A stretch of 64,000 bases of DNA from Azolla caroliniana (taxonomy: Eukaryota; Plantae; Polypodiophyta): positions 10,354,001 through 10,418,000 of the forward strand of contig JBHGNT010000003.1 in NCBI GenBank assembly GCA_043228905.1, written 5' to 3'. Positions 28,412-59,158 of the stretch are shown piece by piece. The notes below the pieces were generated by a model that had not been told where the DNA came from, searched no databases, and was given only the letters and a program-made list of their open reading frames with translations. Numbering within the stretch: position 1 is the stretch's first letter; every line of letters starts with the position of its first letter. The position numbers were made by a program, and so were the translations under genes.

Positions 28412-29197
28412 ATGGCAAAGCTTACTTCCGTATTCCTCATGGCCGTGATCATGCTCGCCACATGTATCGTGGCCAATGCTAGGTCCGTAGGGCGGGACCG
28501 TGAAGAGGAGCGACGCGATCGACGTCGTGAGGGAGACATTGACGAGGAGAGGCGCGATCGACCCCGAGACGGGGAGAGCGATGACGAGAGGCGCGAGCGA
28601 CGTCGTGAGGGGTTCCTTGAGGAGGGGCACCGCTACAGAGATAACAAGAGAGACTCTGAAGAGGAGAGGGAACGTCGTAGCCGTGGTCGCGATGAGCCAC
28701 GTGACGAGGAACTGAGGCGAGAGTGTGGTGATTTCATCGACAAGCAGATCCGAGAGCTACAAGAGCGCTCCGAAAGAGAGGAAGGTGAACAAGGACGTTG
28801 CTCCCCATGGATTGAAAACACTCGATACTCAAGACCCTCAGAACGATGTTGCAGGAACGTCGAACGAATCCCCGCCGAAGATCACTGCGATCGCCTACGT
28901 CATGCCTTGTATGCTGATGAGGAGGACCGACGCAATGATGAAGACCGCCGCCATGGCCAACAATCAAGGGAACACCGTAGGTGGGAGGAAGAGGACGAGG
29001 AGCGCGAGAGAGATAGCAGCCATGAGCAACGAGACGGTGACAAACGCCGCCACCGCATGTCTCGACGACAAGAGGACGAACGCCACCAACGTCGCCAATT
29101 CAAGGCCGATGACGAGGAAAGAGCTCTAGGCGTCGCCACCTCCCGCCTACTCCAACAGTGCGATTTTCGCCCTCGTGCTTGTATTCGTCGCTTCTAA
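28412..29197 (+). CDS. Secreted Arg/Glu/Asp-rich 2S-albumin-like (prolamin superfamily) storage protein, copy 1, intact ORF of 261 aa
   Basis: Hydrophobic signal peptide (about aa 1-23); LRRECGDFI, ERCCRNVERI, DHCDRL and RLLQQC..RAC match the 2S-albumin Cys2, Cys3/4, Cys6 and Cys7/8 contexts; IEN processing motif; about 63 Arg (hand count); TATAAA at 28340; intronless; paralogs downstream. Confidence 0.82.
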   Translation: MAKLTSVFLMAVIMLATCIVANARSVGRDREEERRDRRREGDIDEERRDRPRDGESDDERRERRREGFLEEGHRYRDNKRDSEEERERRSRGRDEPRDEELRRECGDFIDKQIRELQERSEREEGEQGRCSPWIENTRYSRPSERCCRNVERIPAEDHCDRLRHALYADEEDRRNDEDRRHGQQSREHRRWEEEDEERERDSSHEQRDGDKRRHRMSRRQEDERHQRRQFKADDEERALGVATSRLLQQCDFRPRACIRRF

Positions 29198-29270
29198 ATA
29201 GTACATAAACCTTGTTCAAATTATTCTAAGTGTTTACGAACAAGTGCGTCTCCCCGATCGCACATTACAC

Positions 29271-32200
29271 CCACATGGAAGACTGGATGAATTCCAACAC
29301 CATCGGGAAGAGCGAGACAATAGGCTGATGACCCAATGCGTTTGAGGACTGTAAAAGGTCCACAAAACCATGGGGCTAACTTAGCACACTTACCCGTAGA
29401 CAATGTCTTAGAATTGTGAGGTACACATAAAAATACCTTCTGTCCAAGGTTGAATACACGAGGTTGCCTATGATGATCGGCATAAAAACACGCTCTATCT
29501 TGAGCTATTTTTATATTATCTCGTGCAATATGCAACATATCTTGCATATCCCGAAGAAAGTTTTGCGTACTTCGCAACTCATCATGATGTATATTAACAT
29601 CAATCGAGGCTCGTGGCTGAAAACCATACATCAACATAAAAGGACTATATCCCGTCGATGTATGCTTGGAGCTATTATAAGCAAACTCCAAAATTGGGAG
29701 ATAACGTTCCCATTTTGTTGGTTTTGCACCAACGTATGCTCGAAGCATGTCCTCAATAATTTGATTTACTCGTTCTGTCTGTCCAACGGAATGAGGATGA
29801 TCCGTGGAGCTCATGCTCAACGTAGTTTCTAATTTCTTAAAGACTTGCGTCCAGAAGTCACTAGTAAACTTTGGATCTCGATCACTCACGATATCCATTG
29901 GTAACCCATAAAAACGAAACAATTCGTCAACGAATTGGTAAGCCAATTCAGGAGTTGTTATCGTGGTTTTAGTAGCAATAAATCTGGCCATTTTAGTTAG
30001 TCGATCAACGACAACCCAGATGGCATCATGACCTTTTTGGGTGCGAGGAAGGCTAACAATAAAATCCATGGATATACTTTCCCACTTATTATTGGGAATG
30101 TCCAAGGGATGTAAAAGTCCTGCGGCTTTAAGTCGCTCGGCTTTGTTAACCTGACACTGGTGACATTTAGTCACATAGCTATGTATGTCAAGACGCATCT
30201 TAGGCCAATAAAATTGAGTGGAGATGAGAACGAGTGTATGATGTATTCTAGGGTGCCCTGCTAAGGGTGCAACATGGCATTCAAAAAGAATCCTCTTTTT
30301 GACCTCGGGTAAATCTGGAACACAAACCTTCCCATTACGGTAGAGAAAACCGTTAGCAATGTGGAAGTATTCCTTCGAGGATGTGATGGTGTCTGTTCCA
30401 GACTCAACTCTTGCCCAGTATTTTGCAAAATAACGGTCATCAGGATACTTTCCTCGAAGGTGATCATAAAGATCTGATGTTATTTCAGTGACGCTAAGCA
30501 TGTTAATTTCACGGATGCGACTTAGTGCATCAGCGACAATGTTCATGGAGCCTTTACAATATCGTATGGAAAAATCAAAGTCCTGGATGAGATCAGCCCA
30601 TCGTGCCTTACGACCTTTTAGGTCTTGTTGGTCACAAAAATATTTCAAGGACTCGTGGTCCGTAGTTACCACAAAGCGATTTCCATAAAGATAATGGCGC
30701 CATGTTTTGAGCGCATGTATAACTGCAAATAATTCATTTTCTTGAACGGTATACCGACATTGAGCAGAATCAAGTTTCTTACTCTCGAATGCTATTGGTT
30801 TACCATCTTGATACAAGACAGCACCTATAGCATAATCGCTTGCATCGGTTTCAACCTCAAAAGGTTTTGAAGGATCAGGTAAAAGAAGTGAAGGAGCCTT
30901 GCAAACCAAGTCCTTGAGTTCCTTAAAGGCGAGGTCTAGTGTAGCATTCCAAACAATAGGTTTTGTAGACTTACGTGTTTGACCTTTTAAAAGATCAGTA
31001 AACGGCGTCATCAATTGGGAGTAATTACGAAGAGACTTTCGCAGAAACCCGACAAAACCAAGGAATGATCGAACTTCTCGAATATTCCGAAGAGTGGGCC
31101 AAAGCTTGATTTTCTCAATGCGAGAAGGATCAATTTCAACTCCTCGTTCGGTTATGAGATGTCCTAGATAAGTAATTGATTTCTTGAAGAACTCACATTT
31201 TGAGATCTTTGCATAAAACTGTTTGTCACGCAATGTTTGTAAAACAAAGCGGACATGTCTAACATGTTCTTGTAATCTACGGCTATAAACTAAAATATCA
31301 TCCAAGAAAATAACGACAAATTTTCCAAGTTGTTCTCGGAAAATGTCATTCATTTCTTGTTGAAAAGTAGCCGGAGCATTGGTCAAACCAAAAGGCATAA
31401 CCAAAAACTCCTAATGGCCATAGCGCGTACGAAATGCCGTTTTAGGAACATCGTCCTCACTTATTCGTATTTGATGGTAGCCAGTACGGAGATCAAATTT
31501 CGTAAAATACCGATCTCCCTGGAGACGGTCAATTAGATCGTCAGCCCAGGGAAATGGGTACGAATTCTTGATCGTCACTTTATTCAAGCGTCGGTAATTA
31601 ATACACATACGCCATGTGCCCTCTTTCTATTTAACCAAGAGAACTGGTGCACCCCATGGAGATTTACTATAACGTATATAACCCATTCGTAAATAGTCCT
31701 TGAGTTGCTTAGATACCTCATCTTCTTCGGATCGACTTAAGCGATACGAAGGTATACTTATTGGTGCAACACCAGGTACAATATCTATACGATGGTCTAT
31801 ATTACGTTTAGGAGGTAACCCATCAGGTAGTTCACTTGGAAAAACATCATGAAAATCATTTAAGATTTCATCAAGTTGTTGTTGTTCAAAATATGTTAAT
31901 TGAATCAGGACATTATCGATATTGTAAACGTGAATGTCCGGATCAAGTACACAATAAAATAACGTAGAACAAGACAAGTCGGATATTGATGGACACGAGG
32001 AAACAATAGAGAGGGATTGTTTTTTTACACATTGAATAAAATGCGTACAATCGTTCAGTACAAAAGAAATGGAATGGCGAACCCAATCAATAAATAAAGA
32101 AGAGTTTTTATTATAAAACCAGGGATAACCCAGTATTACATCGGTGGTACAAACATTCATTACATGGAAGTCTACTTCCTCTATATAAGTATAAATAGAA

Positions 32201-33420
32201 ATTCCTAATGAATGAATCGCCCCGTTGATGTATTGTACTCTTCCATCAGCCAAGTGCACCGTGTAGGTATGATCACTTACGGTGGGTTGGATTCCCCATA
32301 TCTGAACCAAACGATCATTCACAAAATTGTGTGAGCTTCCCGAATCAAATAAAAATTGTATGGGAGATCCATTGATATACCCGTTTGCACGTAGTAAATC
32401 ATTGGGACCCAATACATAGTGAGGGAAAGAACATTGACAATTACTTAAATGATGTGTATAGACCTGAAGGACATTAGGAATCTGACCTTTATGGTCTGCA
32501 GCTTTAGCTTTGTTGTCGTGCTCTTTCCGTTGGAGCTTTCGACATTGATCTTTTGTATGACCCTTCTTTTTGCAGAATACACAAAAAGGATGTTGTCGCT
32601 TACAATCGCGATCCAGGAATTCGTTGGGTGTCTTGCGTTTCCCAACAAATTGTGACTGCTTAGTCCCGGGCGCTTCGTTGGGTTTGTTGTGGTCCTTCTT
32701 CGAAGTGCGTTGATAGCGAAGAACTATTTCAACGGCCTCTTCGAAGGATTTTGGATCCTTATCGTGCACTATCCAGTGATAGTCCAAATTGGGGATGCCA
32801 TTGACAAAACAAGCTATCAACCAATTGTCCCCTTCTAGACCCGATTTTTGGATTTGCGTTCTGGCATGGTGAACATAGTCTTCTAGCGAGGAAAATTTCC
32901 TCTTACAGAGGTTCATTAAAGCTTGTGCTGCCTCGGTTCGAGAGGGAGGTTGAAGAAATTGGCCCTTAAAAACCGTGACAAAATCTGTCCAGGTATCGGG
33001 CAATTTCCCCATAGTACGGAGCCCACGCCAGCAGGCTGCGGCCTTACCCCCGAGTTCTCGGCCGACATATGCAATCTTTGTACTATCTGGCGTGGGATAG
33101 AGCTCAAAATGAGACTCCCATCGTCCCAGCCATGTGCAGATTGCTTCTTCGGTTCTTTCCTTTTTGTCTCCCGTAAATGGCTTAACGACAAACGATGGCT
33201 CACCTTGTCGCTCATCAGGTCTATTAGTCTCTCATTGTAAACTAATGACACGTGCCTCAAGAGCACTCTGAGATTGCCGAAGTTCAGTCATTTGTTGAGC
33301 GGTGAAACTAAGGTATTGGGTTATTTGTGCCAAATACATCTCAGTGGACATTTGTCCAGGAGGATTCCCTTGAGTTCCTTCCGCTTGAGCGGATGACATC
33401 GGGTCGTTAATTTGAGCCAT
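29271..33420 (-). pseudogene. Disrupted gag-pol of Gypsy D
   Basis: CVFCKKKGHTKDQC knuckle, FDSGSSHNF protease, FLDD RT, TDASD RNase H, integrase, GPF motif; stops at about 31627 and 31411 and frameshifts in gag. Confidence 0.92.
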
Positions 33421-34122
33421 TAAAGATTATTTCTGGAAAAGAAATAGGATAAGGTCAGAGAGATAGTCATAACATCATGTCGTGATGTAAACATATCATG
33501 GGCAAACATTAATCGATATCATGATCTCACGTCAATACGCCTCTAGACTTATGAGATGAGGTTCAAGATCAGGTTACTATGGTAACACAAAGTTGTTTTA
33601 AAAACCATGGGGGTGACAAATAAATGTCTTTCCCTTATCTCTATATCGATTTTTTCATGGTGGCTCCCCGAGGCTCAACCATGTATGTTCGCGTCATGAA
33701 TAATTGCGATGGCATACGCCAAAGTGCAACCTAATGGTTAAGCCAAATGAGCCTTCGTTTCGTAGTAGGCCCACGTGGCCCATCACATGGTCACGTCATT
33801 ACAAATGCCTCTCGTAGGAACGAGCTCATGGTGGCATCGTATCCATGTAACGAGGGAGGGATGTTGGATACGTGTGTCATTGGAGCGACCTCACTTGAAG
33901 TGGGTCAAGCCCTACGTACTCAACATCATTATGGCTATACGCGTTTCTTTATGTAACGAAATCGAGGTCATCAACGGGTTTGTCAACAATCAAAAATTGT
34001 TGAAAAAGGGATGGAGACAACGCCATTCTCACAAAAATGTAAGGACGGCCACCAACATCCTTTTCCCGACAAGGACAACTTTCGATATAATCACGTAATA
34101 ACGAATATACACATATGTTTAC

Positions 34123-34207
34123 TGTTGGAAGCAATGTCGTCAGTGCGGAAGATCAAGAAGCACTCGTTCCCTGTTTATTCCCTGCGTATGACAGATTGTA
34201 TGTCGTT

Positions 34208-34241
<34 letters not shown>

Positions 34242-37200
34242 ACAAAAGACTCTTTATTTCACAAAGAATAATACAACAACCAACCTTACAAAAAGGTTAC
34301 AAGGTCACTATATATAGTGACCGACTTAGGGCAACTACCCTTTATGATAATTACATAAATGGCCAAAACGGGATAGCGTGAATACGTCCATTATACACAT
34401 GTATTCGACACTCCCCCGTAATGGGCGTATACATGGGTTATCTAAGATTACAGGTATAGACTTAGGTTCTCGGACATATCAGCTTTGTTCGAGTCGGCAG
34501 GGTCCGAAGGCAGAAGACCGAACTGGTCGGGTCGGAACAGTTGAAACCGATCATTAAGGAACTGATGTCGGTTGTCGGGAACCATCCTGCTCTGTGTCCG
34601 GCTCTAACCGGACTGGTTTGTCGTTACGCCCATCTGATGCCGAAGAGACCGAAAACGGTCTGCCGAAAGACACTTGGTCATTCCATCTGCGACATTGTCG
34701 GTTGTGGATATTTTCTCTAGACCGATTTTCCCTGAAATGACGCAGTCCCGAACGAAGTGATATCGAACGTCGATATGTTTGGAGGCGTTGTGGTGAACCG
34801 GATTTTTCGACAAGGCAACAGCACCTTGACTGTCGCTGTAGACAACTGGAGCCGAGTCATGTTCGACTTGTCGAAACGTGTGCGCCAGCCGACCGAGCCA
34901 CAAAGCTTCTTTTGCTGCGTCGGACGCAGCTACATATTCTGCTTCGGTCGTTGAGGTCGCTGTGCACTCCTGAAGTTTCGACTTCCACGAGATTGCTCCA
35001 TTGCCGAATTTGAAGCAGTATCCGGTTGTTGATTTCCGACTGTCTATACAGCCGGCGAAATCCGAGTCGGTGTAACCGACTACGCCTGAGGTTCGGTTCG
35101 GACCGAAAAGAATGTCGTGATCTTTTGTGCCAGCCAGATATCTGAACACATGCTTGACTGCGTTCCAATGCGATCGGCCAGGATTGTGCATAAATCTGCT
35201 AACGACTCCTACGGCATGAGATATATCAGGCCGTGTCGCGACCATCAGGTACATAAGGGAGCCGACTGCCGGTGCATACGGTACCGACTTCATATCTTCC
35301 CCCTCCGGACCGGATGTCGGGCAGTCTCGCTGAGAGAGCCGAAGATTCATGGGGAGCGGGGTTGAAGCAGATTTGGCTGATTGCATGTTGAAGCGTTGTA
35401 AGACACGTCCGATATAGTCGGTCTGAGACAAAAAAAGATGTCGTTTATCGCGATGCCGACTAATCTTCATGCCAAGGATGTGTCGTGCCGGACCGAGGTC
35501 CTTCATGGCAAACTGCAACCGCAGTTGCCGAATGAGATCGGCAAGTTCGCCCGCATGGCGTCTAGAAATTAGCATGTCGTCCACGTAAATGATGAGGAAG
35601 ATGGGTGATCCATCTTGAGCTGTGTTGGTGAAGAGACAATGGTCCTCATCGTTTTTTGAGAAGCCGATCGATTGGATGAAGTCGTCGAACTTCTTGTACC
35701 ATTGTCGTGGTGCCTGTTTGAGGCCGTATAGACTCTTCCTGAGTCGGCAGACTAGATGTTCTTGGCTAGTTGCCACGAAGCCTTTTGGCTGCTCCATATA
35801 AATTTCCTCCTCGAGATCACCATGGAGGAATGCTGTTTTGACATCTAGCTGAATCAGCTCCAAGTTGTCGGCTGCCACTACGCCGAGTAGGAAACGAAGG
35901 GTTGTCATTTTCACCACTGGTGAAAAAATTTCGTCGAAGTCGACGCCATATTCTTGTCGGAAGCCCTTCGCAACTAATCTGGCCTTGTACTTTGGGGTGG
36001 TCGAATCAGACGTCTCTTTTAGTCGATAAACCCACTTGCAAGGAAGAGCACGTCGGTTCCTAGGTAATTCGACCAGATCCCAAGTCTTGTTTGCCCGAAT
36101 GGAGTGCATTTCCGACTCCATCGCCAGATGCCCGGTGGCTGAATCGACAGATGTCGATGCTTCTTCGTAAGACGTCGGTTCGCCGGCGTCGGTGAAGAAA
36201 ATTCCAGGAGAATACCTCTCCGGAGGTTGCGACAGTCTCTCGGATCGTCGAGGTAAGATTGGACTGGTCGCATCGGGTATCGAGGTCGGATGGTCCGAAA
36301 CCGAATCATTCGGCTGTGCCGAGTCAGAGTTGTCCGAGTCGGTAGTGTGAGGTTCAGCTACCCGTGAAGCTGACCGTGTGTTAAGAGCGGGGCCTTCTTG
36401 AAGGGTCGGCACATCGGAAAATGTTACCCTTCGGACTTCGATCGGTTTTTCGACGGATGGATTCATAGCCGACTCGTTGAACACAACGTCCGAACTTCGA
36501 ACGATTTGTCTGCGTTCGGGGTCCCAGAGTCGGTATCCCATTTCGCCGTCGGATCCATATCCAAGGAAAATGCATTTCCTGGACCGAGGTGCAAGTTTTC
36601 GGCGATCATCTTTCGGAATAAGGGCGTACGCCTCGCATCCGAAGATCCTCAGCTTGTCGTAATTCGGCTTACTGCCGATCCATAGTTCCTGAGGAATTTG
36701 AAGTCCTAGAGGTCTACTTGGCGACATATTGATTATGTGTACTGCCGTGAGTAGAGCCTCTGCCCAGAAGCCATCCGACAGTCCGGAGTGTTGGAGCCTG
36801 GAAACTATCCGTTCTTGGATTGTCCGATTCATGCGTTCGGCAATCCCGTTTTGCTCCGGACTGTGTGGTGCCGTAAATTCACGTCGGATGCCGCGTTGTC
36901 GGCAGAATTTGACGAATTCTTCGGATTTGAACTCTCCCCCATTGTCTGTCCGAAAGCATCTCAGCTTTCGGTCGGTTTGATTTTCTACCATAGCGAGCCA
37001 ATCTGAGAAGATCGAGAAGACCCGATCTTTGGTGCGAATCGGATAAGCCCACACCTTTCGAGTCGAATCGTCAATAAAAGTGACGAAGTAAGAGGCACCG
37101 CCAAGAGACTGATGCGGCATTGGGCCACAGACGTCCGAGTGGACTAAATCGAGAGGTCTCGTTTCTCTTGGTGCTGATGTCGGGTGTGATGCGGCTACTT

Positions 37201-39368
37201 GTTTGCCATACTGGCAATGCTCGCAGAATTGATGGTCGGAGAAGGAGAGTTTGGGGATGTATCCGGCTCTAGATAGGTGCGTGATGCCGGCCTTGCTGAG
37301 GTGTCCTAATCTTCTGTGCCATAGTGATGACACAGGAATATCCACCAAAAACAGGTTACCCTCTCTGAGCGTAACATGTAACGGATACAGTGAGTGTATC
37401 TTGGGTCCTCTAGCAAGCAGGAGGTTCCCCCTGTGGAGTGTCCACCCTCCCGAAGAAAAACCGGCACGGATGCCGTCTTCATCTAGTTGTCCGACGGAGA
37501 TCAATGGCCTTGAGAGCTCGGGTACATGTCGGACATTGTGGAGTACAAGTGTAGAGCCACCTGCAAGGTTGAGCTCTACTGTGCCGATTCCGATGATGTC
37601 ACAGTGTTGCGAGTTGCCGACTCGAACTGAGTCGGAGTGACGGATCGTATATTGCCGAAATTGGGATCGATGAGGAGTCACGTGAAATGACGCGCCCGAA
37701 TCTAAGAGCCATGTGCTCGATTCTTCAGTCGTGAGTAGAACTTCTGATCCGACTGGATTTTCGATTGATAGTATATTCGGGTCGTCTGGTAGCACATCAG
37801 CTGAGAAGCTGACGTAATTGACCTCCTCATGCCGGCCACTCTTCTTGTTGTTCTTGTTCTTGAGTGCGCGGCAGTCGGCTTTGATGTGTCCGGGTTTCTT
37901 GCAATAGTTGCAGATTCGGTTATCCCGTGACTGGCTCCGTCTTCGCTGATTGTTCGGCGGCCGTGAGGAATCTCTTCCTCGTATGTTCGATCGGTCTGTC
38001 GAACCTTGTACTACATAAGCGTCGTCTGTTGAGTCTTTGGCGAAAGACTTTCTCCGAGCTGCTTCGGTCAGGATTGCGCTCGTGACTTCGGAGTACTTAA
38101 CAGCCGTGGTTGACGCGTTGCACACGGTTGTGACGAAAGTTTCCCAAGATGAGGGAAGGCTGCTCATGAGTATCATTGCTCTGAGTTCATCCTCGATTGC
38201 CGTCCCCTGTGACGAGATTTGGGAGCTGATGCTTTCGTACTCATTGAGGTGTGCTTGAACCGAATCGGATTCTTTCATCCGCAAGTTGTAGAGGCGCCGG
38301 ATCAGAAACATCTTCGTTGCGGCGACCTTCTTTTCGTAAGTGTCCGACAGTGTTTTCCACAGTTCGAATGCTGTCGTACACGATTGCACCGTAAAGTATA
38401 CCGATTCCGATAGGTGCATCCGAATCGTGGCGCGGACGATTCTGTCCAGCTTCTGCCACTCAATTGGTTTGTATCCTTCTGGAGGTTCTTCATTTTCGAT
38501 GGGATCGATTTGTCCCTTGACTATGAGATAGTCCTGCATTTGCTCCTTCCAGAAGTTGAAGTTCGATCCATCGAACTTTCGTAGACTCATTTCTGACGAG
38601 CCGGATGTTGATGCCATCAAATTCGGTTTCGGTTGACGAAGCTCGGTTCGGAGTTGACTACGAACCTTGTTGGAGTGCAGCCAGTTGGCTCACCCGATAT
38701 CGTTCTAGTCGGATTTGAACCCGAGTCGGTTCGGTTTCGGAATTTGCTCGAATTGACTCCGGTAGCTTGAGGGACAGAACCGACTGGTCTTCCCGAATGT
38801 TGCCGAGTCGGAGTGAGCCCGGTTCGCTTCGGATATATATGCCGAATACCGATTATTAAAACCGATTATCTGGACCGATTCTGCTTCGGTTGACTGCAGC
38901 GACTAGAGAGACGGATCCAACTGATCCTCTCGAATGTCGATCAGCCAGATGAAGCACGAATTTGGGGTTGTTGTCTTGAGACCGATCTGCACCGAGTGGT
39001 TACAACGAGCAGCGTTTGATTACCTCTTCGGATGCCGTTAAACCGAATGGAGCACGATCGTGTCAATGTTGCACAAGGGGATTTCACCTCGAGCGGTTAC
39101 GATCACAGGGAACAGAGTACGACCTGATGGCTTACTCCAAGCAAGAATTATCTAACGCAATGAGATGCAAACCTGGTTTTTCTTCTTCTTCTCTCTTTCT
39201 TCGAATGACGCAGGAAACCGAATGCAGAGACAACGGCCGACAGCGGATTGAGGACCGACTACTGTGCAGGCTCTGATACCAGATGTTGGAAGCAATGTCG
39301 TCAGTGCGGAAGATCAAGAAGCACTCGTTCCCTGTTTATTCCCTGCGTATGACAGATTGTATGTCGTT

Positions 39369-39402
<34 letters not shown>

Positions 39403-41946: not shown

Positions 41947-41977
41947 ACGAGGCAGTAGGAGGATATCAAGTTCGAAG

Positions 41978-47986: not shown

Positions 47987-48394
47987 ACCGGAAACTGGCC
48001 GGTAAGCAAATCCGGAGAACGGGTCTGGTAAGCAAATCCAGAAACGGGCCGGTAAGCAAAACCGGAACCGGAACGGGTATGCAAAACCGGAAACCGGTCG
48101 GTAAGCAAAACCGGAACCGGAATCGGCAAGCAAACTAGAACCGGAACCGGCAAGCAAACCGGAACCGGCCGGCAAGCAAAACCGGAACCGAAACCGGCAA
48201 GCAAACCGGAATCGGAACCGGTCGGCAAGCAAACCGGAACCGGCCGGCAAGCAAAACCGGAACCGGAACCGGCAAGCAAAACCGGAAACCGGCCGGCAAG
48301 CAAAACCGAAACCGAAACCGGCAAGCAAACCGGAATCGGTCTGCAAGCAAAATCGGAACCGGAACCGACCGGCAAGCAAAATGGAACCGGCTAC
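47987..48394. repeat. Same minisatellite in the 3' LTR of P, one 25-bp unit longer
   Basis: LTR lengths are 1292 and 1317 bp; the extra unit is near 48260. Confidence 0.9.
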
Positions 48395-49089
48395 CGGACG
48401 ATGTTGGACGCGGACGGACGAAAGATTGGATCATGCAACAAACTAAAGTAAAGTGAAGAGAACTAAAGTAAAGGCCATGTGGACGCAAGCAACTAAAGAA
48501 GGGAGTGCATGGAAAAAGTAAAGGTCATGTGGACAATCACATGCAACCAAAAGAAAAAGCAAGGCAACTAAAAATAGAGGCCATGCAACAAAAAAGTAAA
48601 AAGGCTATGATCAAGAGGGAACTCCATTTTGATGGCATTTTTTTTTCCTACACTAGGGGAGACTCTCCATATTACCTTAATTTTCTTCTCAACTCCCTTA
48701 TCTTAGGAAGCCATAATACTCATAGAGCCGAATCCTAATCTTCCCTACGGAAGCCATATCTACCAAAACCCCTAATTTTTCTTTTCTATTAATCTTAGTA
48801 AACCTAAAACTTCTACATCTCAATCTTGGGACATATTGTAATTTCTTTTCCCTTTATTAATGAAATTTGTGAATCTTTATCATTTTGCATTAATTGTTTA
48901 ATATAATCATACGAATCCGATATCTTCTGGTCGGAGGCCTCGGGGTCCTGCCTCAAAGTTCGCGTATCCTCGTCGTATTTTCGCGACACCGTAACACTAG
49001 GCGTGTGGGAGGGTGGACTAGTTGGTATGGGTCTTGTGCAAGAGTTGTATGCAGGACACACACATTATGGTAATAGGAGTGGTGAGTGA

Positions 49090-49128
49090 CATGCATGTGA
49101 TCTGATTGCATGGCCATGTGTAAATAAA
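49090..49128 (+). promoter_or_regulatory. Proximal promoter of copy 2: RY element CATGCATG, TGCATG and a TATA-like box
   Basis: CATGCATG 49090-49097; TGCATG 49107-49112; TAAATAAA at 49121; conserved upstream of copy 3. Confidence 0.75.
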
Positions 49129-49194
49129 GGTGGAGGGAACAATGTCAATACAATCCATTAGGAGACAAGCACTCGGATCATAAGGATAATCGCA

Positions 49195-49980
49195 ATGGCA
49201 AAGCTTACTTCTGTATTCCTCATGGCCGTGATCATGCTCGCCGCGTGTACCGCGGCTAATGCTAGGTCCGTAGGGCGGGAACGTGAAGAGGAGCGACACG
49301 ATCGATGTCGTGAGGGAGACATTGACGAGGAGAGGCGCGATCTACCCCGAGAGGGGGAGAGCGATGACGAGAAGCGTGACCGACATCGTGAGGGGTTCCT
49401 TGAGGAGGGGCGCCGCTACAAAGATAACAAGGGAGACTCCGAAGAGGAGAGGGAACGTCGTAGCCGTGGTCGCGATGAGCCACGTGACGAGGAACTGAGG
49501 CGAAAGTGCGGTGATTTCATCGACAAGCAGATCCGAGAGCTACAAGAGCGCTCCGAATGATAAGAAGATGAACAAGGACGTCGCTCCCCATGGATCGAAA
49601 ACACTCGATACTCAAGACCCTCAGAACGGTGCTGCAGGAATGTCGAACGAATCCCCGCCAAAGATCGATGTGATCGCCTACGTGATGCCTTGTAAGTTGG
49701 CGAGGAGGAACGACGCAATGATGAAGGCCGCCGCCATGGCCAACAATCAAGGGAACACCGTAGGTGGGAGGAAGAGAACGAGGAGTTCGAGAGACATAGC
49801 AGTCGTGTGCGACGAGAGGGTGACGAACGCCGCCACCGCATGTCTCGACGACAAGAGGACGAACGTCAACAACGTCGCCAATTTAAGGCCGATGACGAGG
49901 AAAGAGCTCTAGGCGTCGCCGCCTCCCGCCTACTCCAACAGTGCGATATTCGCCCTCGTGCTTGTATTTGTCGCTTCTAA
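49195..49980 (+). pseudogene. 2S-albumin-like gene copy 2, full length but with premature stops
   Basis: Colinear with copy 1 (786 bp); TGA TAA at 49558-49563 and TAA at 49693. Confidence 0.92.
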
Positions 49981-50408
49981 ATAGTACATAAACCTTGTTC
50001 AAATTATTCTCGTGGTATCTCTCTAATTTCTCGTAAGTGTTTATGAACAAGTGCGTCTCCCCGATCGCACATTACACCCACACGAACGTAAACACGAGCA
50101 CCAACGTCCCTCCAACGTATAGAATTTGCCTATATTGACCACAAACCACCCAAATGGAAAAAAAAGCTCAAAGCAAACACCCATACCGCACACGCCACGT
50201 CAACGGCTAAGGTCAACTTGTACACGCGGCGAATGTGAACTTGTGTTCCACACTTTCCCAATAGGACGCTCCTTGTGTGGTAGTCTGGGTAGCTTTCCTT
50301 GTCGTCGTTACCAACCCCTCGTCCGAACGAGCGAGTACGGACACCGGTCTATCTACGTTCATCGATGTAGCACACTCGGGAACCATACTTGTGTCCCACA
50401 GTAGCCTC

Positions 50409-50739
50409 CACGTGCTTAGTGTCTTGGCGCTAGCAGGTTCTAGTTTAATGTGCACGTGCCCACACACCCCTACGCGCACGTCCGAGTGCGCACGTTTACC
50501 TATGTATAAATGTTATGTTGCTCGACAAGTCCTCACGTGAGGAGGAGGAGAACCCGCTACAGGTTGCGCCTAGATTTTCTAGTGACAATATGACACCTAG
50601 GACTAGCCTAGACGTGTGGGAGGGTGGACTAGTTGGTATGGGTCTTGTGCAAGAGTTGTACGCAGGACACACACATTATGGTAATGGGAGTGGTGAGTGA
50701 CATGCATGTGCTCTAATTGCATGGCCATGTCTATATAAA
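50409..50739 (+). promoter_or_regulatory. Complete promoter of copy 3: G-boxes/ABRE cores, RY elements and TATA
   Basis: CACGTG at 50409, 50453 and 50534; ACGTGT at 50612; CATGCATG at 50701; TGCATG at 50718; TATATAAA at 50732. Confidence 0.78.
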
Positions 50740-51356
50740 GGTGGAGGGAGCAATGTCAACACAATCCATTAGGAGACAAGCACTTGGATCATAAGGATTA
50801 TCGCAATGTCAAGGCTTACTTCCGTATTCCTCATGGCCGTGATCATGCTCACCACGTGTACCGCGGCCAATGCTAGGTCCGTAGGGCGGGACCGTGAAGA
50901 GGAGCGAGGCGATCCACGTCATGAGGGAGACATTGACGAGGAGAGGCGTGGGGAGAGCGATGATGAAAGGCACGAGCGACGTCGTGAGGGGTTCCTTGAG
51001 GAGGGGCGCCGCTATAGAGATAACAAGAGAGACTCCGAAGAGGAGAGGGTACGTCGTAGCCGTGGTCGCGATGAGCCACGTGACGAGGAACTGAGGTGAG
51101 AGTGCGGTGATTTCATCGACAAGCAAATCCGAGAGCTACAAGAACGCTCCGAAAGAGAGGAAGGTGAACAAGGACGTCGCTCCCCATGGATCGAAAACAC
51201 TCGATACTCAAGACCCTCAGAACGGTGCTGCCGGAACGTCGAACGAATCCCCGCCGAAGATCGATGCAATCGCCTACGTGATGCCTTGTATGTTGACGAG
51301 GAGGAACAACACAATGATGAAGGCCACCGCCATGGCCAGCAATCAAGGGAACATCG

Positions 51357-54300
51357 TGTCGAATACATGTGTATAATGGACGTATTCACACCATCCCGTT
51401 TCGGCCATTTATGTAATTAGCATAAAGGGTAGTTGCCCTAAGTCGGTCACTATATATAGTGACCTTGTAACCTCTTTGTGAGGTTGGTTGTTGTATGATT
51501 GCTTTGTGAAATAAAGAGTCTTTTGTGTCTCTCTCTCTCTCTCTGTGCAACGACCTACATTCTGTCATACACAGGGAATAAACAGGAATCGAGTGCTTCA
51601 AGATCTTCCGCACTGACGACATTGCTTCCAACATCTGGTATCAGAGCAAGGTTCGGCCGTCATCACCGCCTGCACAGCATTCGGTTCTTCACTTCATCTC
51701 GGCCTGCACAGTATTCGCGTCATTCGAAGAAAGAGAGAAGAAGAACAAAAACGAGGTTTGCACCTCATCGAGTTAGATCCTCTTGCTTGGAGTAAGCCCT
51801 CAGGTTGTACTCTGTTCCTTGTGATCGTAACCGCTCGAGGTGAAATCCCCTTGTGCATCATTGACACGATCGTGCTCCATTCGGTTAAACGGCATCCGAA
51901 GAGGTCACCAAACGCTGCTCGTTGTAACCACTCGGTGCAGATCGGTCTCAAGACAACAACCCCAAATTCGTGCTTCATCAGGCTGATCGACATTCGAGAG
52001 GATCAGTTGGATCTATCTCTCTCGTCGCTGCAGTCAACCGAAGCAAAATCGGTCCAGATAATCGGTTTCAATAATCGGTACTCGGCACATATATCCGAAG
52101 CGAACCGGGCTCACTCCGACTCGGCAACACTCGGGAAGACCAGTCGGTTCTGTCTCTCAAGTTACCGGAGTCAATTCGAGCAAGTTCCGAAGCTGAACCG
52201 ACTCGGGTTCAAATCCGACTAGAACGATATCGGGTGAGCCAACCGGCTGCACTCCAACAAGGTTCACAGTCAACTCCGAACCGAGCTTCGTCAACCGAAA
52301 CCGAATTTGATGGCATCAACATCTGGCTCGTCAGAAATGAGTCTACGAAAGTTCGATGGATCGAACTTCAACTTCTGGAAGGAACAAATGCAGGACTATC
52401 TCATAGTCAAGGGGCAAATCGACCCCATCGAAAATGAAGAACCTCCAGAAGGATACAAACCAATTGAGTGGCAGAAGCTGGACAGAATTGTCCGCGCCAC
52501 GATCCGGATGCACCTATCGGAATCGGTATACTTTACGGTGCAATCGTGTACGACAGCATTCGAACTGTGGAAAACACTGTCGGACACTTACGAAAAGAAG
52601 GTCGCCGCAACGAAGATGTTTCTGATCCGGCGCCTCTACAACTTGCGGATGAAAGAATCCGACTCGGTCCAAGCACACCTCAATGAGTACGAAAGCATAA
52701 GCTCCCAAATCTCGTCACAGGGGACGGCAATCGAGGATGAACTCAGAGCAATGATACTCATGAGCAGCCTTCCCCCATCATGGGAAACTTTCGTCACAAC
52801 CGTGTGCAACGCGTCAACCACGGCTGTTAAATACTCCGAAGTCACGAGCGCAATCCTGACCGAAGCAGCTCGGAGAAAGTCTTTCGCCAAAGACTCAACA
52901 GACGACGCCTACGTAGTACAAGGTTCGACAGACCGATCGAACATACGAGGACGAGATTCCTCACGGCCGCCGAACAATCAGCGAAGACGGAGCCAGTCAC
53001 GGGATAACCGAATCTGCAACTATTGCAAGAAACCCGGACACATCAAAGCCGACTGCCGCGCACTCAAGAACAAGAACAACAAGAAGAGTGGCCGGCATGA
53101 GGAGATCAATTACGTCAGCTTCTCAGCTGATGTACTACCGGACGACCCGAATATACTATCAATAGAAAATCCAGTTGGATCAGAAGTTCTGCTCACGACT
53201 GAAGAATCGAGCACATGGCTCTTAGATTCGGGCGCGTCATTTCACGTGACTCCTCATCGATCCCAATTTCGGCAATATACGATCCGTCACTCCGACTCAG
53301 TTCGGGTCGGCAACTCGCAACACTGTGACATCATCGGAATCGGCACAGTAGAGCTCAACCTTGCAGGTGGCTCTACACTTGTACTCCACAATGTCCGACA
53401 TGTACCCGAGCTCTCAAGGCCATTGATCTCAGTCGGACAACTAGATGAAGACGGCATTCGTGCCGGTTTTTCTTCGGGAGGGTGGACACTCCACAGGGGG
53501 AACCTCCTGCTTGCTAGAGGACCCAAGATACACTCACTGTATCCGTTACATGTTACGCTCAGAGAGGGTAACCTGTTTTTGGTGGATATTCCTGTGTCAT
53601 CATTATGGCACCGAAGATTAGGACACCTCAGCAAGGCCGGCATCACGCACCTATCTAGCGCCGGATACATCCCCAAACTCTCCTTCTCGGACCATCAATT
53701 CTGCGAGCATTGCCAGTATGGCAAACAAGTAGCCGCATCACACCCGACATCAGCACCAAGAGAAACGAGACCTCTCGATTTAGTCCATTCGGACGTCTGT
53801 GGCCCAATGCCGCATCAGTCTCTAGGCGGTGCCTCTTACTTCGTCAGTTTTATTGACGATTCGACTCGAAAGGTGTGGGCTTATCCAATTCGCACCAAAG
53901 ATCGTGTCTTCTCGATCTTCACCGATTGGCTCGCTATGGTAGAAAATCAAACCGACCGAAAGCTGAAATGCCTTCGGACAGACAATGGGGGAGAGTTCAA
54001 ATCCGATGAATTCGTCAAATTCTGCCGACAACGCGGCATCCGACGTGAATTTACGGCACCACACAGTCCGGAGCAAAACGGGATTGCCGAACGAATGAAT
54101 CGGACAATCCAAGAAAGGATAGTTTCCATGCTCCAACACTCCGGACTGTCGGATGGCTTCTGGGCAGAGGCTGTACTCACGGCAGTATACATAATCAATA
54201 TGTCGCCAAGTCGACCTCTAGGACTTCAAATTCCTCAGGAACTATGGATCGGCAGTAAGCCGAATTACGACAAGCTGAGGATCTTCGGATGCGAGGCGTA

Positions 54301-56793
54301 CGCCCTCATTCCGAAAGATGATCGCCGAAAACTTGCACCTCGGTCCAGGAAATGCATTTTCCTTGGATATGGATCAGACGGCGAAATGGGATACCGACTC
54401 TGGGACCCCGAATGCAGACAAATCGTTCGAAGTTCGGACGTTGTGTTCAACGAGTCGGCTATGAATCCATCAGTCGAAAAACCGATCGAAGTCCGAAGGG
54501 TAACATTCTCCGATGTGCCGACCCTTCAAGAAGGCCCCGCTCTCAACACACGGTCAGCTTCACGGGTAGCTGAACCTTATACTACCGACTCGGACAACTC
54601 TGACTCGGCACAGCCGAATGATTCGGTTTCGGACCATCCGACCTCGATACCCGATGCGACCAGTCCAATCATACCTCGACGATCCGAGAGACTGTCGCAA
54701 CCTCCGGAGAGGTATTCTCCTGGAATTTTCTTCACCGACGCCGGCGAACCGACGTCTTACGAAGAAGCATCGACATCTGTCGATTCGGCCACCTGGCATC
54801 TGGCGATGGAGTCGGAAATGCACTCCATCCGGGCAAACAAGACTTGGGATCTGGTCGAATTACCTAGGAACCGACGTGCTCTTCCTTGCAAGTGGGTTTA
54901 TCGACTAAAAGAGACGTCTGATTCGACCACCCCAAAGTACAAGGCCAGATTAGTTGCGAAGGGCTTCCGACAAGAATATGGCGTCGACTTCGACGAGATT
55001 TTTTCACCAGTGGTGAAAATGACAACCCTTCGTCTTCTGCTCGGCGTCGTGGCAGCCGACAACTTGGAGCTGATTCAGCTAGATGTCAAAACAGCCTTCC
55101 TCCATGGTGATCTCGAGGAGGAAATTTATATGGAGCAGCCAAAAGGCTTCGTGGCAACTGGCCAAGAACATCTAGTCTGCCGACTCAGGAAGAGTCTATA
55201 CGGCCTCAAACAGGCACCGCGACAATGGTACAAGAAGTTCGACGACTTCATCCAATCAATCGGCTTCTCCAAAAGCGATGAGGACCATTGTCTCTTCACC
55301 AACACAGCTCGAGATGGATCACCCATCTTCCTCATCATTTACGTGGACGACATGCTAATTTCTGGACGCCACGCGGGCGAACTTGCCGATCTTGTTCGGC
55401 AACTGCGGTTGAAGTTTGCCATGAAGGACCTCGGTCCGGCACGACACATCCTTGGCATGAAGATTAGTCGGCATCGCAATAAACGACATCTTTTTTTGTC
55501 TCAGACCGACTATATCGGACGTGTCTTGGAACGCTTCAACATGCAATCAGCCAAATCTGCTTCAACCCCACTCCCTATGAATCTTCGGCTCTCTCAGCGA
55601 GACTGCCCGACATCCGGTTCGGAGGGGGAAGATATGAAGTCGGTACCGTATGCACCGGCAGTCGGCTCCCTTATGTACCTGATGGTCGCGACACGGCCTG
55701 ACATCTCTCATGCCGTAGGAGTCGTTAGCAGATTTATGCACAATCCTGGCCGATCGCATTGGAACGCAGTCAAGCATGTGTTCAGATATCTGGCTGGCAC
55801 AAAAGACCATGGCATTCTTTTCGGACCGAACCGAACCTCAGGCGTAGTCGGTTACACCGACTCGGACTTCGCCGGCTGTATAGACAGTCGGAAATCAACA
55901 ACCGGATACTGCTTCAAATTCGGCAATGGAGCAATCTCGTGGAAGTCGAAACTTCAGGAGTGCACAGCGACCTCAACGACCGAAGCAGAATATGTAGCTG
56001 CGTCCGACGCAGCAAAAGAAGCTTTGTGGCTCGGTCGGCTGGCGCACACGTTTCGACAAGTCGAACATGACTCGGCTCCAGTTGTCTACAACGACAGTCA
56101 AGGTGCTGTTGCCTTGTCGAAAAATCCGGTTCACCACAACGCCTCCAAACATATCGACGTTCGATATCACTTCGTTCGGGACTGCGTCATTTCAGGGAAA
56201 ATCGGTCTAGAGAAAATATCCACAACCGATAATGTCGCAGATGGAATGACCAAATGTCTCTCGGCAGACCGTTTTCGGTCTCTTCGGCATCAGATGGGCG
56301 TAACGACAAACCAGTCCGGTTAGAGCCGGACACAGAGCAGGATGGTTCCCGAAAACCGACATCAGCTCCTTAATGATCGGCTTCAACTGTTCCGACCCGA
56401 CCAGTTCGGTCTTCTGTCTTCGGATCCTGCCGACTCGAACAAAGCTGATATGTCCGAGAACCTAAGTCTATACCTGTAATCTTAGATAACCCATGTATAC
56501 GCCCATTACGGGGGAGTGTCGAATACATGTGTATAATGGACGTATTCACACCATCCCGTTTCGGCCATTTATGTAATTAGCATAAAGGGTAGTTGCCCTA
56601 AGTCGGTCACTATATATAGTGACCTTGTAACCTCTTTGTGAGGTTGGTTGTTGTATGATTGCTTTGTGAAATAAAGAGTCTTTTGTGTCTCTCTCTCTCT
56701 CTCTGTGCAACGACCTACATTCTGTCATACACAGGGAATAAACAGGAATCGAGTGCTTCAAGATCTTCCGCACTGACGACATTGCTTCCAACA
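51357..56793 (+). mobile_element. Intact Copia element A3 (LTRs 51357-51633 and 56517-56793, 277 bp each)
   Basis: TSD CATCG; LTR pair looks identical; PBS TGGTATCAGAGC at 51636-51647; PPT GGGGGAG before 56517. Confidence 0.98.
52310..56323 (+). CDS. Copia gag-pol polyprotein (A3), uninterrupted
   Basis: All domains present; same length as A1 and A2. Confidence 0.97.
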   Translation: MASTSGSSEMSLRKFDGSNFNFWKEQMQDYLIVKGQIDPIENEEPPEGYKPIEWQKLDRIVRATIRMHLSESVYFTVQSCTTAFELWKTLSDTYEKKVAATKMFLIRRLYNLRMKESDSVQAHLNEYESISSQISSQGTAIEDELRAMILMSSLPPSWETFVTTVCNASTTAVKYSEVTSAILTEAARRKSFAKDSTDDAYVVQGSTDRSNIRGRDSSRPPNNQRRRSQSRDNRICNYCKKPGHIKADCRALKNKNNKKSGRHEEINYVSFSADVLPDDPNILSIENPVGSEVLLTTEESSTWLLDSGASFHVTPHRSQFRQYTIRHSDSVRVGNSQHCDIIGIGTVELNLAGGSTLVLHNVRHVPELSRPLISVGQLDEDGIRAGFSSGGWTLHRGNLLLARGPKIHSLYPLHVTLREGNLFLVDIPVSSLWHRRLGHLSKAGITHLSSAGYIPKLSFSDHQFCEHCQYGKQVAASHPTSAPRETRPLDLVHSDVCGPMPHQSLGGASYFVSFIDDSTRKVWAYPIRTKDRVFSIFTDWLAMVENQTDRKLKCLRTDNGGEFKSDEFVKFCRQRGIRREFTAPHSPEQNGIAERMNRTIQERIVSMLQHSGLSDGFWAEAVLTAVYIINMSPSRPLGLQIPQELWIGSKPNYDKLRIFGCEAYALIPKDDRRKLAPRSRKCIFLGYGSDGEMGYRLWDPECRQIVRSSDVVFNESAMNPSVEKPIEVRRVTFSDVPTLQEGPALNTRSASRVAEPYTTDSDNSDSAQPNDSVSDHPTSIPDATSPIIPRRSERLSQPPERYSPGIFFTDAGEPTSYEEASTSVDSATWHLAMESEMHSIRANKTWDLVELPRNRRALPCKWVYRLKETSDSTTPKYKARLVAKGFRQEYGVDFDEIFSPVVKMTTLRLLLGVVAADNLELIQLDVKTAFLHGDLEEEIYMEQPKGFVATGQEHLVCRLRKSLYGLKQAPRQWYKKFDDFIQSIGFSKSDEDHCLFTNTARDGSPIFLIIYVDDMLISGRHAGELADLVRQLRLKFAMKDLGPARHILGMKISRHRNKRHLFLSQTDYIGRVLERFNMQSAKSASTPLPMNLRLSQRDCPTSGSEGEDMKSVPYAPAVGSLMYLMVATRPDISHAVGVVSRFMHNPGRSHWNAVKHVFRYLAGTKDHGILFGPNRTSGVVGYTDSDFAGCIDSRKSTTGYCFKFGNGAISWKSKLQECTATSTTEAEYVAASDAAKEALWLGRLAHTFRQVEHDSAPVVYNDSQGAVALSKNPVHHNASKHIDVRYHFVRDCVISGKIGLEKISTTDNVADGMTKCLSADRFRSLRHQMGVTTNQSG

Positions 56794-56917
56794 CATCGTA
56801 GGTGGGAGGAAGAGGGCGAGGAGTGCGAGAGAGATAGCAGTCGTGAGCGACGAGAGGGTGACGAACGCCGCCACCACATGTCTCGACAACAAGAGGACGA
56901 ACGTCAACAACGTTGCC

Positions 56918-59158
56918 AACAAGAGAGACTCCGAAGTGGAGAGGGAACGTCGTAGCCGTGGTCGCGATGAGCCACGTGACGAGGAACTGAGGCGAGCGTG
57001 CGGTGATTTCATCGACAAGCAGATTCGAGAGCTACAAGAGCGCTGCGAAAGAGAGGAAGCTGAACAAGGACGTCTGTTACAGGCATGACCATTTAATATC
57101 CCGTGGTGAGAATTTACCGTAGTATTCTATACACGTGGATAAGTGTGAGGGTTAAACGAGAGTGTAAAGAAGGGGAGGATTACTTTTAATCCTCGGGATT
57201 GAGACAACCCATTAGGTCAAGTGTGAACTTGCATGGGGACCTTGGGTATCGCTATAAATAAGAGGCCTAACTACCCTCATTTAATAATCTTTTTGACTAC
57301 ATCGAGACTCTGCTCTTGTGGTGGTTCAACTCTTGGAGCGAGCGCGCTAGCACCAGGTACGACTCGACGCCAGGGCGGTGGTATGGGACGCCGATCGAGG
57401 CTCGAGTCCGTCTCGATCCCTTCGCTCGGGGGTGGTCGGGTGGATCGGCACCCTTCTTTCTCTTTCTCCTTTCTATCTATCATTTGTTTATCCTTATCTT
57501 AAGCTTAATTTAATACTTAGATCTCTAATATTTGGTATCAGATTTATGTACTAATGTTTCTTTGTTTTTCATTTGTCTTTTGATTGATGTTGATCGATCG
57601 ATGTGCGGTCGGCCTTGATCCAGACAACGATCAACAAAGAACTTCGGTAGCTCTTTCCATAATTTTTCTTTCTATTCTCTCTTCTCCCATCTAATCATGT
57701 GTTTAGTTTATATCTCAATTTTTTTCATTAAGTCAATGATGTTGTAGTGGTCTTTAATTGATTATCTAAAACGTTTACATATGTGCACGAGGTCAATACC
57801 TTGTTTGACATATAAATAATATGTGATGAGTGTCGTATGCGTACGAGGTTAATACCTCAATTACGTATTACGTTCACGAACATATGTTACGTTTGCGTAT
57901 GAGTTTAATACCTTGATTTATTGTAAACGATATGCGGTTGGTCTCGTATGCGTAAGAGGTCAATACCTCAATTGCGTATTACGATGATCTCTTATTTGTG
58001 GATGTTTCGTGTGCGTAGAGGTATATACCTCGATTATGTATCTCGATCACATCATTTGTGGCTATTTAATATAACGATATGTTAATATAGGCATATGTGG
58101 TCACGTATATACGTATTTGATCGTATATATGTGATAAGTAAACATATGTGTATATTCGTTATTACGTGATTATATCGAAAGTTGTCCTTGTCGGGAAAAG
58201 GATGTTGGTTGCCGTCCTCACATTTTTGTGAGAATGGCGTTGTCACCATCCCTTTTTCAACAATTTTTTATTGTTGACAACCCCGTTAATGACCTCGATT
58301 TCGTTACGTAAAGAAACGCGTATAACCATAATGATGTTGAGTACGTAGGGCTTGACCCACTTCAAGTGAGGTCGCTCCAATGACACACGTATCCAACATC
58401 CCTCCCTCGTTACATGGATACGATGCCACCATGAGCTCGTTCTTACGAGAGGCATTCGTAATGACGTGACCATTTGATGGGCCACGTGGGCCTAGCTACC
58501 CTCATTTGATAATCTTTTTGACTACATCGAGACTCTGCTCTTGTGGTGGGTCAAATCTTGTAGCGAGCGCGCCAGCACCAGGTACGACTCGATGCCACGG
58601 CGGTGGTATGGGACGCCGATCGAGGCTCGAGTCCGTCTCGATCCCCTCGCTCGGGGGTGGTCGGGTGGATCGGCACCATTCTTTCTCTTTCTCCTTTCTA
58701 TCTATCATTTGTTTATCCTTATCTTAAGCTTACTTTAGTACTTAGATCTCTAATAACGTCGCTCCCCATGGATCGAAAACACTCGATACTCAAGACCCTC
58801 AGAACGGTGTTGCAGGAATGTCGAACGAATCCCCGCCGAAGATCGATGCGATCGCCTACGTGATGCCTTGTATGCTGACGTGGAGGAATGACGCAATGAT
58901 GAAGGCCGCCGCCATGGCCAACAATCAAGGGAACACCGTAGGTGGCAGGAAGAGGACGAGGAGCGCGGGAGAGATAGCAGCCGTGAGTGACGAGAGGGTG
59001 ACGAACGCCGCCACCGCATGTCTCGACGACAAGAGGACGAACGTCAACAACGTCGCCAATTCAAGGCCGATGACGAGGAAAGAGCTCTAGGCGTCGCCGC
59101 CTCCCGCCTACTCCAACAGTGCGATCTTCACCCTCGTGCTTGTATTCGTCGCTTCTAA
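56918..59158 (+). pseudogene. 2S-albumin-like gene copy 4: 5'-truncated, interrupted by a deleted D-family element, with stops
   Basis: 56918-57074 plus 58761-59158 match codons from about 78 to 261 of copy 1; TGA at 58889 and 58988; homologous 3' flank runs to about 59450. Confidence 0.88.
57075..58755 (+). mobile_element. Internally deleted, non-autonomous D-family Gypsy: 5' LTR 57075-57530, PBS, leader, partial 3' LTR about 58490-58755
   Basis: TSD ACGTC (57070-57074 and 58756-58760); TGGTATCAGA at 57533; reverse complement of the D LTR and leader without the A2 and P insertions. Confidence 0.93.

Follow-up and report, generated by a model that had tools for sequence, protein, structure and literature searches.

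A 64,000-nucleotide stretch of DNA (contig JBHGNT010000003.1, positions 10,354,001 to 10,418,000; the window) carries four copies of a tandemly repeated gene, of which copy 1 has its ATG at position 28412 of the window. On balance these copies are best read as a decayed cluster of genes for secreted, arginine-rich (24-31% Arg), divergent six-cysteine proteins of the prolamin superfamily (2S albumin / amylase-trypsin-inhibitor type) that would act as a nitrogen reserve of propagules. Intact members of the family are known here from high-coverage metagenome contigs alone. The window taken by itself gives the more ordinary result, a dead side cluster.

The repeat unit and its members

The repeat unit of the gene family is ~1.6 kb long. 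The first-pass annotation of this DNA had described four same-strand paralogs, and all four were recovered when copy 1 was compared with the window by tBLASTn and BLASTN and the window was compared with itself. They share ~90% identity at the DNA level and occupy the following homology blocks:

28322-29275, plus strand: copy 1, with its open reading frame (ORF) within 28412-29197
48997-50275, plus strand: copy 2, with its coding span at 49195-49980
50608-51357 and 56794-56919, plus strand: copy 3
56918-57073 and 58756-59452, plus strand: copy 4

The spacing of 1611 bp given earlier between the ATG codons of copies 2 and 3 was reproduced exactly (50806-49195). Apart from this family the window contains transposons only, as judged from an ORF survey and domain scans, and an Rfam scan of the window gave no match.

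Copy 1 (28412-29197, plus strand) is the only intact ORF in the window and is an intronless gene for 261 amino acids. Its layout comprises a signal-like peptide (residues 1-23), a region rich in Arg, Glu and Asp (24-100), a cysteine core (105-165), a charged insert (166-240) and two C-terminal cysteines (Cys250 and Cys257). The hydrophobic signal-like segment ends in ANA directly before RS, and M-A-K followed by ~20 hydrophobic residues ending in A-N-A is kept in all copies and in the divergent paralog L001, in keeping with the intronless gene and putative signal peptide that had been proposed. The amino acid composition of copy 1 (Arg 24.1%, Glu 17.2%, Asp 10.7%) likewise agrees with the earlier estimate of about 24% Arg and abundant Glu and Asp.

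Contigs with the same head-to-tail unit were found in two JGI metagenomes (L002 and L003) and in ENA metagenomes (L004-L007), and three metagenome subfamilies can be distinguished, consisting of L004, of L002, L003 and L006, and of L005. L004 is collinear with the window unit across both the coding part and the spacer at ~91% identity. L006 contains a complete ORF of 295 amino acids and the parts of L004 are open. All indels in L002, L003, L004 and L006 are multiples of three and include expansions of an 18-nt unit that codes for D-E-R-R-E-R. The ratio of nonsynonymous to synonymous substitution rates (dN/dS) is 0.03-0.20 among the metagenome contigs versus 0.44-1.14 among the window copies. 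Most of the spacer has diverged, down to 0-50% identity, except for a short block directly after the stop codon and the promoter blocks considered below. Judged from its intact ORFs, in-frame indels and dN/dS values, the gene family is real and under purifying selection. A tandem unit at high coverage could also be non-coding satellite DNA with a fortuitous ORF, but that reading is refuted by the pattern of constraint: dN/dS and the in-frame indels are those of a coding sequence, conservation is much higher in the coding part than in the spacer, and the putative signal peptide and the cysteines are kept. We give it next to no probability.

The array unit is abundant, because the SPAdes coverage of the array contigs is 332-657x compared with 21-25x for a Copia contig in sister assemblies and 1.5x for the L001 contig. 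An estimate of copy number from contig coverage was rejected, as the coverage values come from different assemblies.

Automated annotation had been expected to miss the family, and the searches support this expectation. No named or genome-annotated member was found in the public protein sets searched, and the family is represented there by three metagenome gene calls only, two of which are mis-called fragments and the third the full-length unnamed L006 ORF in the ESM Atlas. A word-based protein search returned one relative with the whole protein and six candidates, none of them scored, with residues 98-170 alone. An exact-sequence look-up of copy 1 retrieved no record, and pattern scans of genome contigs and of viral contigs gave no match.

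The paralog L001 (ENA ERZ1034419, 928 bp) has the same putative signal peptide as the array genes, with 50% identity across the first 100 residues. Its Arg/Glu-rich repeats contain additional cysteines, and the contig ends ahead of any core domain.

Cysteine core, superfamily signal and promoter

The mature protein contains 26.5% Arg in copy 1 and 31.2% in L006, corresponding to ~2.0 nitrogen atoms per residue. It is charge-balanced, with a net charge of -3 to -6 and an isoelectric point (pI) of about 6.

Cysteines are found in copy 1 at positions 105, 130, 146/147, 159, 250 and 257. The family consensus contains six mature cysteines (105, 146/147, 159, 250 and 257), with D-R-C in place of the CxC motif, and these six are kept in the three metagenome subfamilies wherever the sequence covers them. 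The C...CC...C...C...C skeleton described in the first-pass annotation is conserved, with the exception that Cys130 lies outside it. This odd seventh cysteine is private to copy 1 and arose by a CpG transition (R130C). With its six cysteines the consensus does not conform to the eight-cysteine motif C...C...CC...CxC...C...C, and the pattern would fit a protein in which the disulfides C2-C3, C4-C7 and C6-C8 are kept and C1-C5 has been lost jointly. The residues that separate Cys105 from the CC pair include a conserved ...WIENTRY... stretch at the position of the 2S albumin linker, which is a resemblance only. The large charged insert lies at the position of the 2S albumin hypervariable loop.

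The Pfam profile PF00234 (protease inhibitor / seed storage / lipid transfer protein (LTP)), which had been suggested as a check on the 2S-albumin-like identity, matches the cysteine core of every member tested, marginally and at about its gathering score of 21.7 bits (20.1-23.6 bits; E 6e-5 to 7.5e-4). The scores are 22.8 bits for copy 1, 23.6 for its core alone and 22.5 for L004, while L002, L003 and copy 3 fall just under the threshold at 20.1-20.7 bits; pseudogene copies were used in the searches as separate open pieces. PF00234 is the sole family that matches the cysteine core, and for copy 1 three further hits below threshold fall on the signal and the low-complexity N-terminal part. Searched as a profile, the core retrieved seven sequences from the PDB at E<=10, six of which are cereal amylase/trypsin inhibitors (ATIs; best E 0.035), and in these alignments the CC pair falls on CC and Cys159 on the second Cys of CRC. 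In the ESM Atlas, the clusters closest by language-model features are those of prolamin, Globulin 1, gamma-hordein and 2S albumin (0.76-0.80). An exact copy of the L006 ORF is present in the Atlas, and the four structures nearest to the Atlas's low-confidence model of L006 all belong to clusters of the prolamin superfamily (prolamin, A9, gamma-gliadin and LTP_2), with TM scores by target of 0.32-0.59 (0.59 and 0.49 among them). These signals are weak but concordant, and we regard membership of the prolamin superfamily as likely, with good confidence. The 2S-albumin-like identity proposed in the first-pass annotation therefore stands at the level of the superfamily (PF00234, PDB profile and ESM Atlas), and the 2S subfamily is not established.

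The only complete spacer in the window contains the full promoter of copy 3, in which the following motifs were located:

50409, 50453 and 50534: CACGTG
50453-50458: G-box GTGCACGTGCC, kept in all three subfamilies
50612-50617: ACGTGT (within ACGTGTGGGAGGG), core kept in two subfamilies, TTGTGT in L005
50701-50708: CATGCATG, part of an RY-RY-TATA block present in all three subfamilies
50718-50723: TGCATG, part of the same RY-RY-TATA block, all three subfamilies
50732-50739: TATATAAA, 74 bp before the ATG, in the same RY-RY-TATA block, all three subfamilies

The combination of a G-box, ACGTGT, a double RY element and a TATA box is, as far as motifs can tell, the classical layout of a maturation-phase gene. 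B3 factors of the ABI3/FUS3/LEC2 (AFL) group recognise RY elements, and bZIP factors recognise ACGT cores. Expression of AFL B3 genes has been reported in the maturing spores of one fern and one lycophyte (PMC5379062).

Decay of the window copies and the surrounding transposons

None of the four window copies is likely to work, three being broken and the ORF of copy 1 being without its enhancer region. The parts of the array that bear on this are:

27362-28320, plus strand: truncated Copia gag-protease fragment that replaces the copy 1 promoter upstream of about -92, with gag and DSGAS protease motifs reaching the junction
28322-28411, plus strand: remnant of the proximal promoter and 5' untranslated region of copy 1, retaining the TATA box (28340-28345) and one TGCATG at the junction; CATGCATG, ACGTGT and the G-box are gone (upstream alignment)
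28412-29197, plus strand: copy 1, intact ORF
48997-49194, plus strand: 198-bp promoter remnant of copy 2, retaining CATGCATG (49090-49097) and TGCATG (49107-49112)
49195-49980, plus strand: copy 2, full-length pseudogene with three in-frame stops (codons 122, 123 and 167)
49981-50805, plus strand: the complete spacer
50806-51357, plus strand: copy 3, first part, codons 1-189, with one stop and a 5-codon deletion
56794-56919, plus strand: copy 3, second part, codons 188-229, which stops at a deletion junction
56918-57073, plus strand: copy 4, first part, codons 78-129, an out-of-frame fusion to copy 3
58756-59452, plus strand: copy 4, second part, codons 129-261 and ~295 bp of 3' spacer, with two stops

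Copy 1 is without the upstream RY element, the ACGTGT core and the G-box because a Copia fragment abuts it at about -92. This fragment is internal to the element and has no long terminal repeat (LTR), and homology to the unit starts at 28322, 90 bp before the ATG. Changes private to each copy were polarised against the other window copies and the metagenome contigs, with the following counts:

Copy 1: 12 nonsynonymous, 4 synonymous, 0 stops
Copy 2: 17 nonsynonymous, 4 synonymous, 4 stops
Copy 3: 16 nonsynonymous, 6 synonymous, 1 stop
Copy 4: 6 nonsynonymous, 1 synonymous, 2 stops
L004: 2 nonsynonymous, 3 synonymous, 0 stops
L002: 1 nonsynonymous, 4 synonymous, 0 stops
L006: 1 nonsynonymous, 3 synonymous, 0 stops

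The ratio of nonsynonymous to synonymous changes in copy 1 is that expected without selection and, on these counts, resembles the ratios of the broken copies, opposite to those of the consensus-like contigs. CpG-to-TpG/CpA transitions make up 10 of the 16 private substitutions of copy 1, a pattern that reads as the mark of methylated DNA. Hence copy 1, with its promoter cut and its apparently neutral changes, is probably dead too, and would be gathering changes as neutral, methylated DNA does.

Of the four paralogs described earlier, copy 1 alone has an open frame; copies 2, 3 and 4 are pseudogenes with stops, deletions and insertions. The stop in copy 3 is codon 98 in its own reading and is aligned to codon 103 of copy 1. 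Copy 3 breaks off at 51357, where a Copia element (Copia C) flanked by a 5-bp target-site duplication (TSD; CATCG) has inserted, and resumes at 56794; at 56917/56918 its tail meets codon 78 of copy 4 in a different reading frame, with 2-3 bp of microhomology. Copy 4 is in turn interrupted by a 1.68-kb element (element X).

It had also been proposed that removal of the retrotransposons restores a head-to-tail array. A clean array was not regained, since the spacer is ~526 bp short between copies 1 and 2 and ~1.16 kb short between copies 3 and 4. The interval between copies 1 and 2 is filled by nested insertions, comprising a truncated Gypsy element, a 1.7-kb element X split by a Copia element, and an 8.4-kb Gypsy element. 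The insertions within the array are:

29276-33761, minus strand: truncated Ty3/gypsy element (gag-protease, reverse transcriptase (RT)-RNaseH-integrase; ORFs and Pfam) directly 3' of copy 1, where unit homology ends at 29275
33762-34122 and 39572-40632, minus strand: second copy of element X, non-autonomous, 1.7 kb, split by Copia B and ~198 bp upstream of copy 2
34123-39571, within element X: Copia B, LTRs 100% identical, TSD TTTAC
40633-48988, plus strand: Gypsy P, 1317-bp LTRs 97.8% identical, TSD CCGT, 8 bp from the end of element X
51356-56793, plus strand: Copia C, inside copy 3, LTRs 100% identical, TSD CATCG, intact 1338-aa polyprotein
57074-58755, plus strand: element X, 1.68 kb, non-autonomous, with 267-bp direct repeats, inside copy 4

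A 3' LTR was looked for in the truncated Gypsy element at 29276-33761 and none was found. Taken together, the window array is probably a non-working, decayed side cluster of the tandem gene family, broken by retrotransposons.

The gag region of Gypsy P matches DUF4100 only, and its gag-protease, RT and RNaseH-integrase each occupy a frame of their own; short tandem repeats in its LTRs give rise to long spurious antisense ORFs (40800-41424 and 47839-48379). One Copia family is present four times in the window (8684-14153, 34123-39571, 51356-56793 and 60840-64000), each time with an intact 1338-aa polyprotein. Because the four copies are 95-99.9% identical to one another and the LTR pairs of three of the four are 99.7-100% identical, they point to a very recent burst. 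The closest relative of this family among 5.8 billion proteins is 53% identical and comes from the ENA metagenome series that also contains the array. Among named seed-plant matches, identity does not exceed 53% in partial alignments and is ~44% in full-length ones, and exact-sequence look-ups of two of the polyproteins retrieved no record. Next to the nearest Copia relative (L009:1-426, ENA ERZ1034423) is a gene whose product has a glycoside hydrolase family 81 domain. Elsewhere in the window are a chromovirus (Gypsy with a chromodomain after the integrase) at 19457-25129, whose LTRs are 97.3% identical and whose gag and pol lie in separate frames, and a 219-bp repeat in two adjacent copies, 99% identical, at 18277-18726.

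Proposed role, alternatives and related systems

The arginine content, the cysteine core and the promoter make it probable that the family stores nitrogen in spores or seeds. Arg/Glu-rich repeats have grown both ahead of the core and within the hypervariable loop that links helices III and IV. We propose that B3 (ABI3-type) and bZIP factors would switch the gene on during propagule maturation and desiccation, in spores if the source is a fern. The protein would then enter the endoplasmic reticulum, form three disulfides and be deposited in storage vacuoles as a nitrogen (arginine) reserve to be broken down at germination. More tentatively, at somewhat short of an even chance, a fern may have amplified a complete expression cassette, with its G-box, abscisic-acid-responsive element (ABRE)-like core and double RY element driving a six-cysteine protein of ~30% Arg, to tens or hundreds of head-to-tail copies, which would place a seed-type module in spores before seeds.

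Several results weigh against a propagule reserve protein of this superfamily. The sequence signals for the superfamily all lie near threshold and are non-independent across family members, the ESM scores are under the level that excludes shuffled proteins, and the best PDB matches are inhibitors rather than 2S albumins. A phmmer search of 1.84 billion representatives gave three matches only, none of them a named 2S protein, a 2S albumin or matteuccin. The RY/ABRE promoter type is common to late embryogenesis abundant (LEA) and other maturation genes. The first-pass annotation had named a predicted four-helix prolamin fold as a test, and AlphaFold2 (residues 98-261 of copy 1 and the L004 equivalent; two runs, shallow alignments) did not produce it, giving no compact bundle (pTM 0.34-0.35, core pLDDT <50) and modelling the charged insert as a single long confident helix; a Foldseek search of the AlphaFold2 model against the PDB found no match. 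We read the AlphaFold2 outcome as uninformative, not as a refutation.

The missing bundle, together with marginal scores (Pfam at about threshold, best PDB E 0.035, ESM below 0.9) and the presence of only six of the eight canonical cysteines, would also be expected of a low-complexity Arg/Glu protein with a different fold that carries the C...CC...C...C...C pattern by chance. However, four different kinds of search point to the prolamin superfamily alone for the core, the two cysteines that are absent make up precisely one canonical disulfide pair, the insert sits in a known hypervariable loop, and the six cysteines recur in all three metagenome subfamilies wherever the sequence covers them. 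Convergence is accordingly an improbable explanation in our estimate. The long helix and the extremely hydrophilic composition bring to mind a desiccation protectant, a LEA-like hydrophilin sent through the secretory pathway whose charged helices would guard membranes and proteins in dry spores, and ABRE/G-box and RY promoters are equally typical of LEA genes. Against this, the family has a conserved, predicted disulfide core that matches PF00234, the Pfam scan at E<=10 picked up no LEA family, and tandem amplification with repeat expansion is typical of storage proteins; we consider a protectant role decidedly unlikely.

A role in defence would agree with the structural matches, the best of which are bifunctional amylase/trypsin inhibitors, and a putative signal peptide with a high arginine content would suit a secreted amylase or protease inhibitor as well as an antimicrobial protein, or the precursor of an antimicrobial peptide, that is rich in Arg. 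Defence roles are found in many 2S albumins, cereal ATIs and LTPs, and 2S albumins can be reserve and antifungal at once. However, the balanced charge of the family is unlike that of cationic membrane-active peptides, the inhibitor alignments span just the CC...C helix motif without the reactive loops, and the repeat expansion, maturation-type promoter and high copy number point to bulk accumulation. Defence as the main role is thus unlikely, and a reserve protein is the reading with which the family is compared to known systems below.

The family resembles 2S albumins (napin, Ber e 1, SFA-8 and the conifer Arg-rich forms) in having a putative signal peptide that precedes a propeptide-like stretch, a CC motif ahead of a helix that carries I/L-P and Cys, a C-terminal pair of cysteines spaced by 6-8 residues, a variable insert in the helix III/IV loop, richness in both Arg and Glu, a PF00234 match, an RY-containing promoter and a multigene organization. 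It differs in having six cysteines instead of eight and no CxC, in being about twice as long, owing to Arg/Glu repeats of ~75-110 residues each in the pre-core region and the loop, in a similarity too low for phmmer to find any 2S albumin, and in a far higher copy number. Arg-rich 2S albumins are known from conifers, and the RY/G-box promoter is of the classical seed type, so that a divergent but otherwise ordinary family of Arg-rich 2S albumin seed genes, from a seed plant such as a gymnosperm, has to be considered. Neither phmmer nor the word-based search returned a named seed-plant protein, however, and the closest relatives of the window Copia family are as distant as described above, including those from named seed plants. 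We judge this origin very improbable.

Matteuccin, the 2.2S spore storage protein of ostrich fern, is described as 2S-albumin-related (Rodin and Rask 1990, as cited in PMC4973428). Going by that citation, and if the source of the window is a fern, the two are alike as 2S-albumin-related reserve proteins laid down in spores, a concept that has had a precedent since 1990. The phmmer search of 1.84 billion representatives, made without the matteuccin sequence itself, detected no sequence relationship between them. A gymnosperm genome paper reports 2S albumins from seed plants only and infers their origin there (PMC10006428).

The cereal ATIs (ragi RBI, 1TMQ/1BIP/1B1U; barley LDI, 4CVW; maize CHFI, 1BEA/1BFA) are the best solved-structure matches, with ERCCRNVERIPAEDRCDRLR aligned to RCCRQLEAIPAYCRCEAVR. 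Just ~20 residues align, however, and the family has no recognisable reactive-site loop. The ATIs themselves have 10 cysteines and ~120 amino acids, carry no charged inserts and are confined to grasses. In organization the closest likeness is to the cereal prolamin arrays (gliadins, hordeins and zeins) and to rice and oat Globulin 1, which are also tandem intronless storage genes with many pseudogenes and retrotransposon insertions, in which the superfamily core is broken by expanding repeats, and which supply the nearest ESM Atlas clusters. Unlike the Pro/Gln-rich repeats of the cereal prolamins, those of the present family are rich in Arg, Glu and Asp, and its unit is much more regular (1.6 kb), apparently more numerous and from another plant lineage.

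The features that would be new here are a scaffold of six cysteines, expanded Arg/Glu repeats, a cassette arranged like a satellite, and a family of which the public protein sets contain no named or genome-annotated member. The family exemplifies a protein-coding gene arranged almost as a satellite, and the decay of such an array under retrotransposons and methylation. If a fern did amplify such a cassette, a 2S-like protein under ABI3/bZIP control in spores would have been overlooked both by annotation and by studies that date 2S albumins to seed plants (PMC10006428). If the source is a fern, the family would provide a concrete gene and promoter, with RY/B3 and ABRE/bZIP sites and an arginine reserve, for asking whether the seed maturation programme was derived from spore maturation.

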